Below are positions 9,218 to 42,226 of a DNA stretch of 64,000 nucleotides, one piece after another. The stretch lies in IMG/VR virus record IMGVR_UViG_3300020186_000013, positions 124,001 through 188,000 of that record; one strand, 5' to 3'. Both the position numbers and the translations under genes were made by a program. Below the pieces are notes generated by a model. That model searched no databases, had not been told where the DNA came from, and was given only the letters and a program-made list of their open reading frames with translations. How positions within the stretch are numbered: position 1 is the first letter of the stretch; each line of letters starts with the position of its first letter.

Positions 9218-10510
9218 TCACTGACTTCCGAAGACTCTCTTCGTGACTCGCGAGTAGTCGCCGGACTCTTGGGGGTTCGGCCGCTCGGTGGTCGGAACCG
9301 AGCCGACGGGGTGAACGGTATCGTGGTTCGTAAAGACCCGTTGGTTGGTCTTATTGCCGCCGCTGTGGTCCGCCTTCAGACCCGGCGGTGTGGTGTCCTG
9401 CGGGACCGGCTTCAGCAGGTCGTCGAGGTTCAGCCCAAAGGACTCGGCTTTGATCTGTTGTTGCTTCTGCAACTCGTTCATGTTCGTAGGCGACTGCCCG
9501 TGGAACCGATCAGCCCAGACGTTGTTGGCACCGCCGAGGTTCTGACCGGTCGTCTGAAGTTTCAGCCTGGCATCTTGCATCTTCTTTTGCAACTCGGCCA
9601 TATTGCCGTACTTGCCAGTCTTTAGGCCCGCAACTGCCTCTTCGTGCTGCTGCTTCAGCTGGGCTGCGTACGTCTTCGGGTTGAACCCGGCGTACATCTG
9701 GTCCTTGGTCGGCTGGTACGTACCTGTCTCGACTTGCTGCATCTGATCCGCGAGGTTTTGGATGTGGGCATTGTGGGACTCGGTCAATCGCTGGGCCTCT
9801 TGGTGTGCCCCGGCGTACGTATCAATCGGGTGGTCGCCACGAATGGCGTCGGAGATCTGCCTGCGGCCCGCATACACGCCACCAACAGCCGCAGGGACGC
9901 CGAGACCTACGCCGGCACGACCCAGCCACTTGCCGGACGCGGTCCCCAGCGACGCCGGGGTCGGCATCGTCGGAAGCGAGTTCAGTGAACTCGGAGTCGC
10001 GGCCGGGCTGGGAACCGCCGACCGCGTCACGTTCGGGACCGGCCTTGTCGGTGCGGAGACCGGGCCGGGAACCGCCGACCGCGTCACGTTCGGGACCGGC
10101 CTTGTCGGTGCGGAGACCGGGCCGGTCCCGCCCACCGACGCCCGCGACGACATCGTCGAGGCGGGTGCCGGCACCAGTTTCGGGCCGAGCATACTCTTAA
10201 CGATCGGGGTAGGCGGGATAGGTTGGTTGATCACCCTTCCCCCGACAGCCTGAGTCGGCAGCGTACGCCCCGCAGTCAGCTGCTTCGCCTTGCCGCTGAA
10301 TTTGCCGAATTCCAGCAAGGTATTGCCGGCGTCCCGCAGCGTCCTGGGGTCCAGGCGACCAGCAGCATCTTTCTCCATCAAGACAACGACGGCCGCGATC
10401 TTGGCCATTGACGAGATGGCAGTCAGCGGAGACGGAGAAGCGACCTGGCGATGCCCGCTACGGGCACCGCCGGCCGCTCGTGCCAGTTGTGCGATGACAT
10501 CCATGCCCAT
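9218..10510 (-). CDS. Hypothetical Pro/Gly-rich virion-like protein with an internal duplication
   Basis: GGGAGGGAG RBS before MGMDV; AKIAA and EKDAA motifs; glycine-zipper segment. Confidence 0.65.
   Translation of the reverse strand: MGMDVIAQLARAAGGARSGHRQVASPSPLTAISSMAKIAAVVVLMEKDAAGRLDPRTLRDAGNTLLEFGKFSGKAKQLTAGRTLPTQAVGGRVINQPIPPTPIVKSMLGPKLVPAPASTMSSRASVGGTGPVSAPTRPVPNVTRSAVPGPVSAPTRPVPNVTRSAVPSPAATPSSLNSLPTMPTPASLGTASGKWLGRAGVGLGVPAAVGGVYAGRRQISDAIRGDHPIDTYAGAHQEAQRLTESHNAHIQNLADQMQQVETGTYQPTKDQMYAGFNPKTYAAQLKQQHEEAVAGLKTGKYGNMAELQKKMQDARLKLQTTGQNLGGANNVWADRFHGQSPTNMNELQKQQQIKAESFGLNLDDLLKPVPQDTTPPGLKADHSGGNKTNQRVFTNHDTVHPVGSVPTTERPNPQESGDYSRVTKRVFGSQ
10011..10124. repeat. 57-bp tandem duplication (2 copies), in frame (GPVSAPTRPVPNVTRSAVP x2)
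   Basis: Identical units start at 10011 and 10068. Confidence 0.9.
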
Positions 10511-28996: not shown

Positions 28997-30517
28997 TTAC
29001 TCGGAGCTTCCCTGCCCCTGGACTTTTTGTTTCTTGTGCCTACGGGCCGTACTCAAAATCGACGGACCGAACTCACCAAGTCGGACACCGTTGAACGCCC
29101 GGTTGTCCCAGTACACATCGGCCATGACCTTGCCGCTGGAACCAGGAGGCTGGTCGGGGTTCTCGTTGATGTGGTCAAAGGGGATGCCATGCTCCTCCAT
29201 CCACGTCTCGATCAACTTCGGGTTGTTGCGAACCGTGAAGATGATAATCCGAACGCCCGCTTCGTGTAAGAGCTTCATCCACTTCTTCGCCCCGCGACGG
29301 GGCAGACCGATGAAGTCCGGGTCATGCGGCTGCTTCTCCTCGGCCAGCGTCCCGTCGAGGTCAACGGCCACCGAGAACCGGCGTTCCTTGTAGTCGGCAG
29401 CCGTCTTGTCGGCGTAGTGGTTGATGACCTTGACGGACGGATCAGACCGCCACCGGGGAAGGTACGCCTTGTAGATCTGAGTGCCGACCTTGGCCTTGGC
29501 CACCCGCTGCTTCCGCCACTCAAGCTCGTCGAGGCCCATGGCCTTCGGGTTGTACTTGCTACTCGACCGGTCGCGGGTCAATCGCTGCTCGACGAGGCGA
29601 TCAAGCGGCGTGTCGATGAGGTGCCGCTCGTGGGCCTTGCGCAACTCAGGATCACCGTGCATGAGCTGCACGCCCTCAATGATCGACGGCACCTTGGCCT
29701 TCCGGATCGCATCCTCAACGAGCTTGCGGTTGTTCAAGCGACGCATGGCGTTCTTCTCTTCGGGGTCGAGGTGAGACACCTCCATGCCCTTCCACTGCTT
29801 CCACAACGGGTGGGCGTCGAGTGATACATGAGGCATCTTGTTTTCGCCCGACAACTTCTTGGCGTAGGTCGTCTTGCCTGCCCCCGAGAAACCTGTGACG
29901 AGGATGTGCTTCAAAGCTGGCGGCAGCCCCTTCAGGTGCTTGAGCACCTCCATACGCTTCGCGTTCGCTGCCACCAGCGTCGGACTCAGGCCGTCCTGCT
30001 TCGACATGGCCATGGCTTCGTCAATGTCGTAAAGTCCCACGCCCTTGCGGGACACCGGCTCAACCAGCTTGTTACCGTGGGGCTCGCCCAGATCGCCGAC
30101 GAAGTAGTGCGTCCGGGAACCCCGGTAGGTCTTGGCCCGCTCGGCCTGCTTTTTTCCGCTGTAGGGCGGCGACCAGTCCAACTCGTGCGGGTCGAATGGA
30201 AGAGGTCGGGGGTTGTGGACGTGGTATCCGCTTTCTTCCGCGAACTCGCGGACCGCAGCCGTCGCCGGGTCTTCACCAGGGTCGATGCCGCCACCGAACG
30301 TCAGGAAGTTGCCAGCGTCAGCGAGACCCCCGAAGATTTTGCCGTCCTTCATGGCAAACATCTCGGCACGATCGCGGTACGGCTTCGGGTTGCTTTCTTG
30401 CGTGACGCCAGGCAGACTGGTACTCAGAGCCGCCAACGCAGCCTTCGTCAGGCTGAGGCGGTCTTCCGGGACCCGTGGGGCCAGAATCCGCAAGATCGGA
30501 TCTTCGGACTCAAACAT
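28997..30517 (-). CDS. Tri-domain NUDIX hydrolase / P-loop kinase / HAD phosphatase
   Basis: Nudix box GGGIDPGEDPATAAVREFAEESG; Walker A GFSGAGKT; HAD motif VDLDGTL..FTVR..K...DVYWD. Confidence 0.85.
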   Translation of the reverse strand: MFESEDPILRILAPRVPEDRLSLTKAALAALSTSLPGVTQESNPKPYRDRAEMFAMKDGKIFGGLADAGNFLTFGGGIDPGEDPATAAVREFAEESGYHVHNPRPLPFDPHELDWSPPYSGKKQAERAKTYRGSRTHYFVGDLGEPHGNKLVEPVSRKGVGLYDIDEAMAMSKQDGLSPTLVAANAKRMEVLKHLKGLPPALKHILVTGFSGAGKTTYAKKLSGENKMPHVSLDAHPLWKQWKGMEVSHLDPEEKNAMRRLNNRKLVEDAIRKAKVPSIIEGVQLMHGDPELRKAHERHLIDTPLDRLVEQRLTRDRSSSKYNPKAMGLDELEWRKQRVAKAKVGTQIYKAYLPRWRSDPSVKVINHYADKTAADYKERRFSVAVDLDGTLAEEKQPHDPDFIGLPRRGAKKWMKLLHEAGVRIIIFTVRNNPKLIETWMEEHGIPFDHINENPDQPPGSSGKVMADVYWDNRAFNGVRLGEFGPSILSTARRHKKQKVQGQGSSE

Positions 30518-30588: not shown

Positions 30589-30783
30589 ATGCTCGTACTT
30601 TCACGCAAGGCCGGCGAGAAGATCCACATTGGCGACAACATCGTGTTGACCATCGTCGAGGTTCGCGGCAACAAGGTTCGCCTCGGCCTCGTGGCCCCGG
30701 CCGACGTTGCCGTGCACCGCGAAGAGGTCTTCGAGGCGATCAAGGCGTCGCAGGCGAACGCAGAGGTCGCGGCCCGGAGCTAG
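30589..30783 (+). CDS. csrA: Carbon storage regulator CsrA/RsmA
   Basis: MLVLSRKAGEKIHIGDNI...VRLGLVAPADVAVHREEV; AAGGAG RBS. Confidence 0.95.
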   Translation: MLVLSRKAGEKIHIGDNIVLTIVEVRGNKVRLGLVAPADVAVHREEVFEAIKASQANAEVAARS

Positions 30784-31331
30784 TCCGAGTCCGCCTTGCG
30801 GGTGCCGTTGCGACCGAGAACGCCGCGACGGCGAACCGCACACGTGATGTGGAAGTCGTACTCGCCCCCTTTGGGGCGAGACGACAGCCCGTAAGACCGC
30901 CGCAGCTTCTGAAGTTCCGGTGAGTGGATCGTTGTAAACCACACCTTCTCCACGCCCGGCCACCCGTCAGGCTCCACTTCCTTCAGCCTCCCCAGCGTGT
31001 ACGTGAACTGCTTGCCACGCTCCGTGATCTTGTCGACGCCGCCGATCTCCTCGACCTCTTCCTTGCGGATGACCGAGATGTGAGCGTTGAACGGCTGGTC
31101 GCCGTGGCCCGGCGGCAACTCGACGCCCGGCTCCCTCATAGACTTGAAGATGCCTCGCACCATGGCGTTGGGCACGGTGAGCATGATCCAGCCGCCGGGC
31201 GTCGCGTAGAGCGTCCCCGCCAGGTTGTACACCGGGACAGGGACACCAGCCTCCTTGACAAACCGCTGGCCCAGGATGAAAGCAACCCGCTGGTGCACAG
31301 CGGGGCCGTTCGACACAGATAGCAGCGACAC
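30780..31331 (-). CDS. 2H phosphoesterase
   Basis: Two HxS/T motifs: AHISV and FHITC. Confidence 0.75.
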   Translation of the reverse strand: MSLLSVSNGPAVHQRVAFILGQRFVKEAGVPVPVYNLAGTLYATPGGWIMLTVPNAMVRGIFKSMREPGVELPPGHGDQPFNAHISVIRKEEVEEIGGVDKITERGKQFTYTLGRLKEVEPDGWPGVEKVWFTTIHSPELQKLRRSYGLSSRPKGGEYDFHITCAVRRRGVLGRNGTRKADSD

Positions 31332-31340
31332 GGTAGCCTC

Positions 31341-31781
31341 CTACTTAACGGTCGGCACGACGGTGAAGTACAACGTGAGGGCGGCGATGACGGCGGTGAC
31401 GATCATACCGAGTACGCCCGCGACGATCTGCCCCCGTGACACGATCTTGGCCGTGTTCATGCCGTTGAAGTGTTTGTTGAGCTGGGTGATTCCGGTGGCA
31501 AGGTTGGCCAGGCTGTGCTGGATGAGGATGTGCTCAGTCTCAAGGTGGGACATCCGCTGCATGAGGGACGGCTGGCCGTTGCCGTCGCGGACGATTACCA
31601 ACAGACTGGCGATGCTGTCATTAAGGGTGATCTGACTCTGTTGCATCTGACCCACGCACGCCGCCATCTTCACCTCGGCCGAGTGTGCGTCACGAAGGTC
31701 CTCCCGGAGTTGATCGACCGAGACCGTGAGCGTCTCCATGCCGGCGGTCAGTTTGATGATGGACTGTTCGGTAGCGTTCAT
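31341..31781 (-). CDS. Coiled-coil protein with a C-terminal TM helix (holin/XhlA-like architecture)
   Basis: Start MNATEQ at 31781 with GGAG RBS; heptad pattern; terminal IVAGVLGMIVTAVIAALTLYF. Confidence 0.6.
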   Translation of the reverse strand: MNATEQSIIKLTAGMETLTVSVDQLREDLRDAHSAEVKMAACVGQMQQSQITLNDSIASLLVIVRDGNGQPSLMQRMSHLETEHILIQHSLANLATGITQLNKHFNGMNTAKIVSRGQIVAGVLGMIVTAVIAALTLYFTVVPTVK

Positions 31782-31812
31782 CTGCAACTCCGTTTGCAGT
31801 TCGGGGCGAAGA

Positions 31813-32035
31813 GAGTGTCGTCGGCCGTGCTTGCCTCCCAGGATCGCCCACTCTGGGTCCAACGCCTCACCTCTTGCGAGGCTGGGCAACACGGTGGCTT
31901 AGCGGCGTTCCACCGATACCTCCAGGCACCCGGCCTTTCCGCCACGGTGCCCTTACCTCGGGTTTACGGCAGTCCCTGCCAACCCACGCTTACCTGCCGA
32001 CGCCAGCAGCAAGGCAAGCACGACCGACGACACCC
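31813..32035 (-). ncRNA. Candidate ~223-nt structured RNA (sRNA or 5' leader) closed by a 24-bp terminal helix
   Basis: Arms 32012-32035 and 31813-31836 pair fully on the minus strand (both deviations are G-U); several internal hairpins; promoter directly upstream. Confidence 0.65.
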
Positions 32036-32037
32036 GC

Positions 32038-32067
32038 ATTATCAAGGCAATCGTGCTTCAAAATCAA
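32038..32067 (-). promoter_or_regulatory. Sigma70-like promoter for the structured RNA
   Basis: TTGATT-N18-GATAAT; predicted start falls within the first bases of the 5' helix arm. Confidence 0.5.
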
Positions 32068-32348
32068 GCCGGAGGAGCTTTGCGGGCAGGCACAGACACT
32101 CGGTGACCGGTGAACTCGCGGGCCTTGTGATATTTCCGGCCACACTCGCAGCGGGCACTGAGTGTCGCCAGGGCACGATCGACACTCTGCTGCGTGTGGC
32201 TCCAAACGGGGCCTACGACCGTTTCCGCCCACTGACACTGCACGTACACGCAGATTTGTTTGACCTTCTTCTCGTTTAGAGCTGACGCGAAGTGCACCGA
32301 AGCGGGGGCGACGAACTTGGACTTCTTCCGTGGTCGAAGGGGTGGCAT
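32064..32348 (-). CDS. Small basic Cys-containing protein
   Basis: 94 aa; GGAGG RBS; CEC...H. Confidence 0.6.
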   Translation of the reverse strand: MPPLRPRKKSKFVAPASVHFASALNEKKVKQICVYVQCQWAETVVGPVWSHTQQSVDRALATLSARCECGRKYHKAREFTGHRVSVPARKAPPA

Positions 32349-32361
32349 TATTTCCTCCGTG

Positions 32362-32571
32362 TTAGCCGTTAATGTCGTCGAGCGGCTTACCCTCTATGGC
32401 TCGGTTGTAGCCCCGACGCCACGCTCCGCGACGTTGCCGTTGTACGCCCTGGCCGATCTTGTACGGTTGATCGTTACGACCGGCCAGGGCGTCTTCGTAC
32501 CCTCGACGGTAGCACGAGAAGAGATGCTTCTGCCAGCGAAACTTGGCGTCGCGTGGGTGTACCTTGGACAT
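32362..32571 (-). CDS. Ribosome modulation factor (RMF)-like protein
   Basis: YRRGYEDALAGRNDQPY...RGAWRRGY parallels RMF HQRGYQAGIAGRSKEMCPY...RSQWLGGW. Confidence 0.55.
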   Translation of the reverse strand: MSKVHPRDAKFRWQKHLFSCYRRGYEDALAGRNDQPYKIGQGVQRQRRGAWRRGYNRAIEGKPLDDING

Positions 32572-37502: not shown

Positions 37503-38159
37503 TTACTCCATTGATTTCGGGGGAGGTGGTCGCGGTCGGGGCGGCTTACTTTCTTTAGGCCGATCCCGTTCGCGTCGCTCGATTTTGCCGTTCACGTGGT
37601 AGACGGTCGAGGCCCCGTCTTCGTTCAACACAACAAGTCTGTCTGCGGCGGTGAAGGTGATGACCAGGCCCTTGGGAATGTCTACAACGCCGTCGTCGAG
37701 TACCACCAGTTGGCCCAGCCCCTCCTTCTGCGTGACGACCGGCGTCGACGAGCGTCGCAACCGCTCCCCGATCCGTTTGTTCAGTTCTCTCTCGTCGGGC
37801 AAGGCGGCTTGCGTGCGGTCAACCAACTCCTGTCGGCCGTCGGGGCCGTCGAGGTAACTGGTCCCATCGGGGTTGACGACAACGGAGTAGCCCGGTGCCC
37901 CCGCGATCAGGGTGCGGCGAGGCTGAGGTTTCAAATCGTCCCGGACTTCCCGTGGCATTGACGCCACGGGCAAGGACAGGGCGAAGGGTGCGGTGGTTCG
38001 AGGCTCGGGAATCCGTTCCCTCGGTGGCTGTCGCGGCTCGGGCGTCCGTTCGGCGTCGGGCAACCCCACGACCAGTAGGGTGACCATCCCGCCGAGACCG
38101 CCCGAGATCAGCACGCCGCAGAAAAGAACGGTCCAGAGGTTGGACCGTTTACGCCTCAT
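37503..38159 (-). CDS. Membrane-anchored hypothetical protein
   Basis: N-terminal TM helix; Pro-rich linkers. Confidence 0.65.
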   Translation of the reverse strand: MRRKRSNLWTVLFCGVLISGGLGGMVTLLVVGLPDAERTPEPRQPPRERIPEPRTTAPFALSLPVASMPREVRDDLKPQPRRTLIAGAPGYSVVVNPDGTSYLDGPDGRQELVDRTQAALPDERELNKRIGERLRRSSTPVVTQKEGLGQLVVLDDGVVDIPKGLVITFTAADRLVVLNEDGASTVYHVNGKIERRERDRPKESKPPRPRPPPPKSME

Positions 38160-38968
38160 TAGAAGAGATCCTCCGCAGCGAGGTGCTGCCGAACGATGCT
38201 GGGGCCGGACTTGAGCAGCTCATCGTAGTTGATGATCCGCTCCTGCATGGAGCGGTTCCGCAAGCGGCGGATGTTGGGACGCGGGATGCGACGCGGTGAC
38301 AGGTCGAGGAACTCGAACACCCGCTGCATCTCACTCTCGAAGTGCAGAGTCAGATCCTTGTACCGGACGAGGAGCTGGTCCTCGCTGCTGGCCTGGACCT
38401 TGGCCCGTGTCGACTCCCAGTCCCACACGAAGGCCGTCAGCTCAGCCGAGTCAAGGCGAATCGCTGAAGGGCGGACGTGGGACAGAGGTTCGCCGCCGCC
38501 GACGAACCACCGCTGGGTCTTCTCGGCCTGCTTCTTCGACACGAAACAAGCAATCGGGTTACGGAGGACGTGGACGACACAGAAGTCGCCCTCGTGCGTC
38601 CGCTGCTTGAACAGGTCGTACAGCTCGTACTGTCGCACCGCCGCGTACGGGGTACGGACGCCGATCACCCGTTCGTCGTGGAGCGGGTTGTCGAACACCT
38701 GGTTGGCCAGGTAGCGGTTAGGATTGGTCTCGGGCGTGAACCACTCGGGCAGCCGAGCGGGGTCCCGCGTCGGGCCGAAGTATTCCTCGTGGGACGCCCG
38801 ACGGATCGCCTCACTCGGGTTGAACAGGTTAAGGTGGCAAACCGCCTCCCCAAGCTGATTGATGACGCCCTGAACAACCGCCGCACCGCTCCGCACCTCG
38901 CCGACCAGGGCGAAGTTGAGGACAGTCGCCGGTCGTTTGGACGAAGACGCTGACATGGCACTTAACAT
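38159..38968 (-). CDS. Sulfotransferase-like (Stf0-type P-loop), divergent
   Basis: FALVGEVRSG, HVLRNPIACFVS, VRYKDL, FEFL, IINYDEL. Confidence 0.6.
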   Translation of the reverse strand: MLSAMSASSSKRPATVLNFALVGEVRSGAAVVQGVINQLGEAVCHLNLFNPSEAIRRASHEEYFGPTRDPARLPEWFTPETNPNRYLANQVFDNPLHDERVIGVRTPYAAVRQYELYDLFKQRTHEGDFCVVHVLRNPIACFVSKKQAEKTQRWFVGGGEPLSHVRPSAIRLDSAELTAFVWDWESTRAKVQASSEDQLLVRYKDLTLHFESEMQRVFEFLDLSPRRIPRPNIRRLRNRSMQERIINYDELLKSGPSIVRQHLAAEDLF

Positions 38969-39034
38969 CCTTCAAATCTCCGTGAAGGTAGTGGACTCGC
39001 CCTGGCATACTAGCCGTGGCAGTTGATACAAAAC

Positions 39035-40195
39035 TCAGACGACAGGTGCAGTCCTTACACCCGTCACGAGATCCGTCTCGTCCACAACCCTCTTGGTCGC
39101 CTTCAACCCCAATCCGTAGGTGTCGCACAACGCGGTCAGGTACGCCACGTCCGCGTCCCCGAACCCGCAGTAACCCTTGTACTCGGGACCGCCGAAGGCC
39201 CCCATGAACTCCTCCTGGGGCCGTCGGTTGCGGTCGTAGTAGAACCCGACCGACAGCATGTGGGCCGGCAGCACGTCGCCGACGAGCACGCCCACGGCCG
39301 GGACCGGTGCGTTGTCGATGACGACCCGCTTGTGAGCGGAGTGCTTCTTCCAGAACTCGGTCAGCTCGTCGTCGGCGTCCTCGTCGTACCGCTGGTGACT
39401 CCGCACGTGGAGCATCGTCGTGCTAATCCCGTTTTCGTCCTCGTGCAGGAAGATCGTCGACGTCTTGATGTTGATGCGGACCTGCCGCTTGAGCATCGTC
39501 GTCAGCGAGTCCGTGCGGAGGGCCATCTGGTACATGAGCCGCATCGGGTGCGAGTTCTCATCGTCCTCCCAGTTGGCGATGTAGTCCCCCGTGGCGATCT
39601 TGAGCCCCTCGTTTCGCATCGCCCCGTAGCCCATGAGTGGCACACGGTGCTCGGTAATCTCGGGGTGGTCCCACGGCACCACGATCGTCGGCAGGGACAC
39701 CTCCTTCGTGACGCCGTTTGCGTCCGTGGTGGTGACGACCTCGGGCACCGGGTCGATGCCGTTGATAATGATGAGTTGCTTGCGGGGGTAGACCTGCTTG
39801 AGGAAGCAGGTGACGGCCTGCCGGGCGTGGTTCACCCGACGCGGGTCCTTGATGACCATCAGGGCCGTGACCATCGGCTGCCGCACCGACGGGGGCGGCA
39901 GGTTCGCCCGAGGTGAGGCAGCCACCGTTGGAACTGGCCGCTCGGTGAGGGCAGCCACACGCGGGACCACGGCGGACTCTTCGGGCAGCGACTCGACCTG
40001 GGTGACCCGTCGCTCAGACTTCGGGGCATCCGGTATTGACGATGAGGCCATGATCGTGCCGGGCTTGATGGCCGGGACGACCCCCAGTCTCTCCTGCTCC
40101 TTCTTCTTCTCCAGCATCGCCGCGAGTTGTTCAGAACTCATGGCCTGCAAAAAGGCTTCCATGGGCAGACGTGCGGTCGCTTGAGACGTAGACAT
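39035..40195 (-). CDS. Glycosyltransferase family 2-like with an N-terminal extension
   Basis: FLKQVYPRKQLIII, GAMRNEGLKIATGDYIANWEDD...RL.YQ; paralog-like to the 36019 gene. Confidence 0.75.
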   Translation of the reverse strand: MSTSQATARLPMEAFLQAMSSEQLAAMLEKKKEQERLGVVPAIKPGTIMASSSIPDAPKSERRVTQVESLPEESAVVPRVAALTERPVPTVAASPRANLPPPSVRQPMVTALMVIKDPRRVNHARQAVTCFLKQVYPRKQLIIINGIDPVPEVVTTTDANGVTKEVSLPTIVVPWDHPEITEHRVPLMGYGAMRNEGLKIATGDYIANWEDDENSHPMRLMYQMALRTDSLTTMLKRQVRINIKTSTIFLHEDENGISTTMLHVRSHQRYDEDADDELTEFWKKHSAHKRVVIDNAPVPAVGVLVGDVLPAHMLSVGFYYDRNRRPQEEFMGAFGGPEYKGYCGFGDADVAYLTALCDTYGLGLKATKRVVDETDLVTGVRTAPVV

Positions 40196-42076: not shown

Positions 42077-42150
42077 ACCCACCGGCGGGACTCGAACCCG
42101 CATAATCCCGCTTAGAAGGCGGTCGCTCTACGCGATTGAGCTACGGGAGG
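42077..42150 (-). tRNA. tRNA-Arg(TCT)
   Basis: TAGCTCAA D-arm, CCGC-CT-TCT-AA-GCGG anticodon arm, GCGGGTTCGAGTCCCGC T-arm; CCA not encoded. Confidence 0.85.
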
Positions 42151-42154
42151 ATAG

Positions 42155-42226
42155 TCGGGGTGGCAGGACTCGAACCTGCGACTTCATGGTTATGAGCCAT
42201 GCGAGCTGCCTCTGCTCTACACCCCA
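42155..42226 (-). tRNA. tRNA with a CAT anticodon (Met; initiator-like D stem; Ile2 not excluded)
   Basis: TGGGGTG/CACCCCG acceptor, GAGC/GCTC D stem, CATGG-CT-CAT-AA-CCATG, GCAGGTTCGAGTCCTGC. Confidence 0.9.

Follow-up and report, generated by a model that had tools for sequence, protein, structure and literature searches.

Several described RNA systems resemble, in one respect or another, the structured RNA reported here. The CsrB/CsrC/RsmX/Y/Z sRNAs (Rfam clan CL00106) present GGA motifs in hairpin loops and linkers, with RsmZ carrying eight GGA motifs in 127 nt and the high-affinity CsrA/RsmE site being an ANGGAX loop on a stem (PMC4005645). These sponges need neither a pseudoknot nor a long closing helix. 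Large riboswitch aptamers, such as those for lysine and cobalamin, typically place a P1 closing helix around a multi-way junction with kissing loops. The phi29 pRNA (RF00044) combines a helix formed by its 5′ and 3′ ends with two mutually complementary loops, the intermolecular pairing of which forms a ring on the portal, while the much longer phage RNAs ROOL and GOLLD, of unknown function, adopt elaborate covariation-supported folds in which kissing loops first read as tertiary contacts proved to be intermolecular bridges (PMC12286853). Finally, paired 5′ and 3′ ends are a feature of Y RNAs, the bacterial form of which (YrlA, partner of Ro60) adds a structured module to the long terminal stem.

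Here, we describe a structured RNA of about 220 nt (about 190–225 nt across the family) from a clade of 180–235-kb jumbo phages, which matched no known RNA family in our searches. The stretch of DNA analyzed (hereafter, the window; 64,000 nt) comprises bases 124001–188000 of a 208,145-bp IMG/VR virus record (63% GC, CheckV completeness 93%), an uncultivated jumbo phage from microbial mats, with near-identical DNA present in several microbial-mat metagenomes. The original prediction placed at this locus an RNA with a 24-bp closing helix, nested stems, and its own promoter, and our analysis confirms that observation. The interpretations offered with it, namely a new ncRNA class, a CsrB-like sponge, a 6S-like RNA polymerase decoy, or a leader controlling a downstream holin-like gene, were only partly borne out.

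The RNA element and its fold

The first 24 bases of the RNA pair with its last 24 to form the cleanest inverted repeat in the window (Table 1). This helix contains exactly two G-U pairs (G2-U222 and U13-G211), which would be A-C mismatches on the plus strand. The minimum-energy fold was −126.8 kcal/mol, compared to −96.5 ± 5.2 kcal/mol for dinucleotide shuffles (z = −5.8; 0 of 200 shuffles as stable), though the plus strand also folded well (z = −6.5), and the z-score alone therefore does not identify the strand. The predicted sigma-70-like promoter, TTGATT-N18-GATAAT, was the only such site on either strand in 3 kb, and a strong csrA match nearby was also confirmed.

Of the stems originally proposed, GGCAG-GGA-CUGCC within GGGUU/AACCC (P3), GGGCACC/GGUGCCU (P4), GGUGG/CCACC (P5), and CCUC-GCAA-GAGG (P6) are supported by homologues. 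The proposed GCCCA/UGGGC stem is contradicted, given that the homologous locus L015 and a variant designated X12/X13 have GCCGA opposite an unchanged UGGGC, and UGGGC lies in the P7 loop. Three elements had been missed: P2 (GCUG-CUGGCGU-CGGC), P7 (CCCAG/CUGGG), and a kissing loop between the P2 and P5 loops.

Table 1. Features of the RNA locus in window coordinates (RNA position = 32036 minus the window coordinate).
Feature	Window position	Strand	RNA position	Observations
p94	32064–32348	−		94-aa Cys-rich small ORF, conserved directly upstream of the RNA
−35-like hexamer	32062–32067	−		TTGATT; the TGA stop of p94 lies inside it
−10 hexamer	32038–32043	−		GATAAT, 2 nt before the P1 5′ arm
Whole RNA	31813–32035	−	1–223	223 nt
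P1 5′ arm	32012–32035	−	1–24	Pairs with 31813–31836
P2 hairpin	31996–32010	−	26–40	4-bp stem, 7-nt loop CUGGCGU; 100% paired, all 4 pairs change on both sides
Kissing loop, 5′ half	32000–32004	−	32–36	GGCGU; pairs with RNA 128–132
J2/3 linker	31987–31995	−	41–49	Conserved GGU(A/U)A; G, G, U, and A invariant in 16 sequences
P3 hairpin	31959–31986	−	50–77	Variable stem; apical GGA at 31973–31975; a hairpin is present here in every homologue
P4 hairpin	31924–31952	−	84–112	Bulged G, G(N)AAA-type loop; 10 pairs, 8 changing on both sides, 96.7% paired
J4/5 purine linker	31916–31923	−		GGAGGU (consensus RGGAGGA); invariant G positions
P5 hairpin	31892–31915	−	121–144	6-bp stem, 12-nt loop; all 6 pairs change on both sides
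Kissing loop, 3′ half	31904–31908	−	128–132	ACGCC
P6 hairpin	31864–31887	−	149–172	GCAA tetraloop; variable, absent in L037; U157-A164 becomes G-C in the X12/X13 variant
P7 hairpin	31837–31857	−	179–199	Family loop consensus GGGGA(A/U); all 5 pairs change on both sides, 98.8% paired
P1 3′ arm	31813–31836	−	200–223	Pairs with the P1 5′ arm
U-rich tract	31805–31812	−		Weak, UCUCUUCG; stronger in relatives (e.g., UUUUAUU in L015)
Small hairpin	31782–31799	−		CUGCAA-ACGGAG-UUGCAG, with the Shine-Dalgarno GGAG of p146 in its loop; compensated stems in L016 (CGUGA-AUGGAG-UCACG) and L024 (CACC-ACGGAG-GGUG)
p146	31341–31781	−		146-aa coiled-coil protein with a C-terminal TM helix, no family match; next gene in most homologues
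2H-SAK phosphoesterase	30780–31331	−		PF22547, E 1.1e-12
csrA	30589–30783	+		PF02599, 84.8 bits; convergent with the RNA's operon

Homologues and covariation

BLAST against GenBank phages with the DNA and with two flanking proteins returned no match, and scans of IMG/VR with two exact 20–22-mers found nothing. A pattern scan of JGI metagenomes returned only the same phage and two chance hits in coding sequence (L011 and L013). Two RNA-type libraries, however, contained exact words of the element, and short contigs from these (176 and 223 nt) matched only the core, 31833–32012, at about 91–93% identity, diverging where P1 begins. Homologues of p146 in Logan and JGI assemblies then gave syntenic contigs with a 250–450-nt gap in the same place, each gap containing a related RNA (L015, L016, L018, L020, L021, and L023; L-numbers denote loci found in our searches). 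Pattern scans added L024, L026, and L035, with the P2 pattern in prokaryote genomes giving seven chance hits besides L026, and L034 also proving to be a chance hit. A covariance model found a further copy directly upstream of the 2H phosphoesterase gene in L009. Lastly, a 2H-SAK protein profile pulled eight IMG/VR loci (six different phage records, two of them already identified), and the model, run on six of these loci, five of them new, found the RNA upstream on the same strand in each (L037, L038, L041, L042, and L043 being new). This makes 16 distinct members, including the window, with 52–77% GC. None of 72 other bacterial genomes from the order of the MAG containing L026 carries the RNA, and the L026 contig itself carries phage genes.

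Members share the same layout: a TAnnnT-type −10 hexamer (GATAAT in the window and L015) 2–13 nt upstream of P1 in 16 of 16, despite the range in GC; P1; P2, with a 4–5-bp stem and a 5–7-nt loop; J2/3; P3, a long hairpin; P4; J4/5; P5, with a 6–9-bp stem and a 9–13-nt loop; P6, often with a GNRA loop; P7; and the P1 3′ arm, followed by a U-rich run in roughly 10 of 16. On a model-fitted alignment of the 16 sequences, P2, P4, P5, and P7 were 98% paired and 23 of 25 pairs changed on both sides, whereas slid controls gave 28–49% pairing and 0 of 500 shuffles reached the observed values, although the fitting of this alignment to the structure favors it. P1 (about 6 to 24 bp) could not be aligned column by column, and we instead compared its arms across 10 homologues. 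Cognate arms averaged −28.9 kcal/mol, compared to −12.5 kcal/mol for non-cognate combinations, and the window and L015 share the outer half of P1 but have entirely different, fully compensated inner halves. The length and sequence of P1 drift freely while complementarity is kept.

The kissing loop was assessed on a structure-agnostic MAFFT alignment, in which all 80 cells (16 sequences by 5 pairs) were standard pairs and four of the five positions showed double-sided changes (G-C to A-U, C-G to U-A, G-C to A-U, and U-A to C-G). Slid controls gave 25–60% pairing and 0 of 500 shuffles reached the observed score. An unbiased scan for further covarying column pairs found no additional helix. Sequence analysis cannot distinguish intra- from intermolecular pairing, and it is possible, though unlikely, that copies join head to tail into a dimer, ring, cage, or other RNA-only (or RNA-CsrA) particle in infected cells, which would make this a small jumbo-phage counterpart of phi29 pRNA or of the ROOL and GOLLD assemblies. 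Like phi29 pRNA, this is a phage RNA of similar size with paired ends and two covarying complementary loops; however, there is no direct evidence for assembly, an intramolecular kiss within a multi-helix junction is the commoner case, no pRNA, ROOL, or GOLLD model matched, the seven helices do not follow the pRNA layout, the phages are jumbo phages rather than phi29-like podoviruses, and ROOL and GOLLD are roughly 3–4 times longer, without homology to this RNA.

The original prediction had named a MITE with dispersed copies or a coding region as readings that would overturn it. BLAST found one copy of the element in the genome and the covariance model found one true copy, the second hit (21 bits) lacking P4, the loop complementarity, and the P7 loop motif and lying inside an ORF. 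No ORF is conserved across the element. Although any long inverted repeat would fold well on both strands, a DNA-level repeat (a MITE, recombination site, or origin) or a coding region is effectively refuted by the compensatory changes that preserve seven helices and a pseudoknot, with G-U pairs occurring only on the minus strand.

Searches of Rfam 15 gave nothing at the element, either in the window (gathering threshold and E up to 10) or in nine homologous loci (E up to 1), including no CsrB, Rsm, 6S, YrlA, or riboswitch model. The proposal of a new ncRNA class is supported by this lack of a match and by the strong covariation across 16 homologues. That of a 6S-like decoy has no support, as the fold is a multi-branched domain rather than a rod with a central bubble. 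The genome contains no Ro/TROVE, RtcB, or reverse transcriptase (RVT_1) gene, which, with the lack of a tRNA-like module, removes Y-RNA and retron readings. Literature searches for jumbo-phage structured RNAs or phage CsrA partners found nothing comparable.

Conserved purine-rich elements and a possible CsrA partner

The six GGA motifs of the original prediction are present, but their number equals the mononucleotide-shuffle expectation of 6.0, and the homologues contain 3–12 with no consistent excess. A CsrB-like sponge in the strict sense is therefore not supported, and we consider it, along with the 6S-like decoy, very unlikely, given also the branched, pseudoknotted shape, which is unlike a string of hairpins. 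Like the known sponges, the RNA has its own promoter; unlike them, it is phage-encoded and heads an operon. A narrower link to CsrA survives. The P3 apical loop contains GGA in 15 of 16 members, mostly as AGGAU, AGGGAU, AUGGAU, or UAGGAU on a stem whose own sequence is free, which is the signature of a presented protein-binding loop and matches the ANGGAX consensus (PMC4005645). GGA also occurs in the P7 loop and in J4/5, each in 14 of 16. Conversely, L024 has AAGAU in the P3 loop, the window and L015 lack GGA in the P7 loop, and in the window itself the P3 GGA is a 3-nt loop closed by G-C, a poorer CsrA site.

csrA lies beside the locus in nine members (the window, L015, L016, L020, L021, L024, L026, L038, and L042) and is present in 5 of 6 near-complete genomes, being elsewhere in the genome in two (G001 and G004). 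It is absent from one complete genome that carries the RNA (G006, 205 kb, terminal repeats) and from an 84%-complete record. Since all members belong to one syntenic phage clade, gene neighborhood is weak evidence.

What our analysis establishes is a previously undescribed family of compactly folded RNAs, in which a closing helix surrounds six hairpins (P2–P7) and a 5-bp loop-loop pairing between P2 and P5 locks the domain, the existence and fold of which we regard as all but certain, lying on the minus strand behind a conserved sigma-70-type promoter element and at the head of the transcription unit containing the 2H phosphoesterase. That it acts as an RNA in its own right, as a rigid scaffold displaying a few conserved, unpaired, purine-rich elements (the P3 loop, the J4/5 linker, and the P7 loop), is an inference, as is any binding of CsrA. 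Evidence that it exists as RNA is a hint only: an ice metatranscriptome contains a 176-nt contig (about 93% identity) covering only RNA positions 29–199, with other contigs of that run matching only 34–36-nt pieces in the 4-kb stretch compared, though DNA carry-over cannot be excluded. On sequence evidence alone, the most likely partner is a CsrA-family protein, either the phage's own, encoded about 1 kb away in most members, or the host's, which the RNA would titrate or position; this remains tentative, and the conserved tertiary fold is not explained by CsrA binding alone. In this view, CsrA bound to the RNA may also couple to translation of the downstream genes, given the next start codon is only about 20–50 nt beyond P1 and often sits in a GGA-containing hairpin.

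The novelty lies in the RNA family and fold, which would add a new class, with seven helices, one pseudoknot, and three conserved purine elements, to the short list of elaborately folded bacterial and phage RNAs, in giant phages whose takeover of host RNA metabolism is poorly understood. At about 200 nt, it is small enough for SHAPE, EMSA, and cryo-EM. Whichever mechanism proves right, a structured CsrA decoy, a phage riboswitch or ribozyme heading a possible counter-defense operon, or a self-assembling RNA would be a first of its kind for jumbo phages.

Genomic context

The block p94, RNA, p146, 2H-SAK, csrA (convergent), Nudix/kinase-phosphatase, p150, and class II RNR is syntenic across the clade. 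In every member with downstream sequence, an ORF on the same strand starts about 20–50 nt after P1, leaving no room for a second promoter, such that the downstream genes must be transcribed through the RNA, and in several members the Shine-Dalgarno GGAG sits in the loop of a small hairpin whose stem covaries. This layout, with a promoter, a structured domain around a closing helix, a Shine-Dalgarno site, and an ORF, would suit a riboswitch-, ribozyme-, or attenuator-like leader that controls read-through or translation of p146, 2H-SAK, and onward in response to a ligand, a protein, or temperature. 2H enzymes act on cyclic phosphate ends or cyclic nucleotides (PMC9117128), the kind of chemistry to which a nucleotide-sensing or self-cleaving leader could be tied. 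However, P1 is about 17–24 bp in many members (−30 to −50 kcal/mol), far too stable for a switching helix, and varies about four-fold in length. No expression platform, conserved alternative pairing, or anti-Shine-Dalgarno sequence was found, and the U-tract is absent in several members. The first downstream gene also varies, being p146 in most, another ORF in L024 and L026, and 2H-SAK directly in L009, although 2H-SAK follows on the same strand at every locus long enough to show it. The originally proposed leader for the holin-like gene is thus possible but weakened, and a cis-acting leader in general, though less likely than CsrA binding, remains possible.

The constant presence of 2H-SAK at loci that reach it, and of the RNA at the six profile-detected 2H-SAK loci searched, could alternatively suggest a Y-RNA-like scaffold, decoy, or substrate for this enzyme and for the Nudix-AAA_33 kinase-phosphatase fusion that follows in most loci, for example in tRNA repair or counter-defense. 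RNA-repair-type genes in the neighborhood are a feature shared with bacterial Y RNAs. We consider this reading unlikely, as the partner genes and modules of Y RNAs are lacking and the linkage may simply be inherited synteny. No solved structure was similar to 2H-SAK by sequence, and its predicted model (pLDDT 74) gave only weak Foldseek hits with E above 0.1, which do not discriminate between RNA-end healing and a cyclic-nucleotide nuclease, as for Acb1 (PMC9117128). The tRNA genes of the phage are not adjacent to the RNA but lie 10 kb away.

Small genes and a putative operator around the RNA

Upstream of the structured RNA, we noted a short ORF with a weak match to ribosome modulation factor (PF04957, E 2e-5, 25 bits, below the 27.9 cut-off). 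Its C-terminal part is conserved in L015, a related locus carrying a homologue of the RNA, and it may represent a phage RMF-like protein beside csrA. The next ORF, p94, encodes a small Cys-rich protein (CxxxxC ... CxC) with no family match, which is conserved immediately upstream of the RNA in eight loci, and its TGA stop lies inside the −35 hexamer of the RNA. Downstream of the RNA, the Shine-Dalgarno GGAG of p146 (the 146-aa coiled-coil protein) sits in the loop of a small hairpin, and two further homologous loci, L016 and L024, keep this arrangement with different, compensated stems. On sequence alone, this looks like a CsrA-type translational operator. The region also encodes a fusion of Nudix, an AAA_33 kinase, and a phosphatase-like C-terminus (PNK-like by PHROGs), which together with the 2H-SAK phosphoesterase forms a predicted RNA-end or nucleotide-processing pair.

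Coordinates of additional features in the window, elsewhere in the genome, and in one related locus
Location	Strand	Feature
Window 32362-32571	-	69-aa ORF, weak RMF match
Window 32064-32348	-	p94
Window 28997-30517	-	506-aa Nudix/AAA_33 kinase/phosphatase-like fusion
Window 31782-31799	-	Hairpin with the p146 Shine-Dalgarno GGAG in its loop
Window 31837-32007		Stretch to which the metatranscriptome contig (run X13) was aligned
G000:C1:23010-23222, outside the window (L044 1511-1723)	-	Weak second hit of the RNA model
Window 42077-42226	-	Two adjacent tRNA genes
Window 38159-40195	-	Sulfotransferase and glycosyltransferase genes
Window 10034-10130		35-nt repeat arms
L018 7136-9555		Ribonucleotide reductase gene with intein and HNH domains

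A metatranscriptome contig and a weak second model hit

When the contigs of metatranscriptome run X13 were aligned to the window, a 176-nt contig was found to start and end within 3 nt of the P1/P2 and P7/P1 borders of the RNA; either the mature RNA lacks the P1 arms (processing) or this is an assembly accident. In the source phage genome (G000), the search with the RNA model also returned a weak second hit (21.3 bits). While this hit displayed a P2-like start, it lacked P4, the loop complementarity, and the P7 loop motif. It lies inside a 206-aa ORF, and we judged it to be a chance match.

Other features of the window and related loci

The two tRNA genes (63 and 53 bits) lie 10 kb from the RNA. 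Genes homologous to the sulfotransferase and glycosyltransferase genes of the window lie just upstream of the RNA in two relatives, L018 and L021. A search for inverted repeats also returned arms that are 71% complementary and partly overlapping, which look like a tandem or inverted G+C-rich repeat. The contig L026, binned in a Nannocystaceae MAG, carries the phage genes p623, p94, 2H-SAK, and csrA as well as the RNA; it is probably a phage contig binned with a bacterial genome, and it provides a weak hint about the host. Finally, the ribonucleotide reductase gene of L018 carries intein and HNH domains (precomputed Pfam hits), which the ribonucleotide reductase of the window does not.
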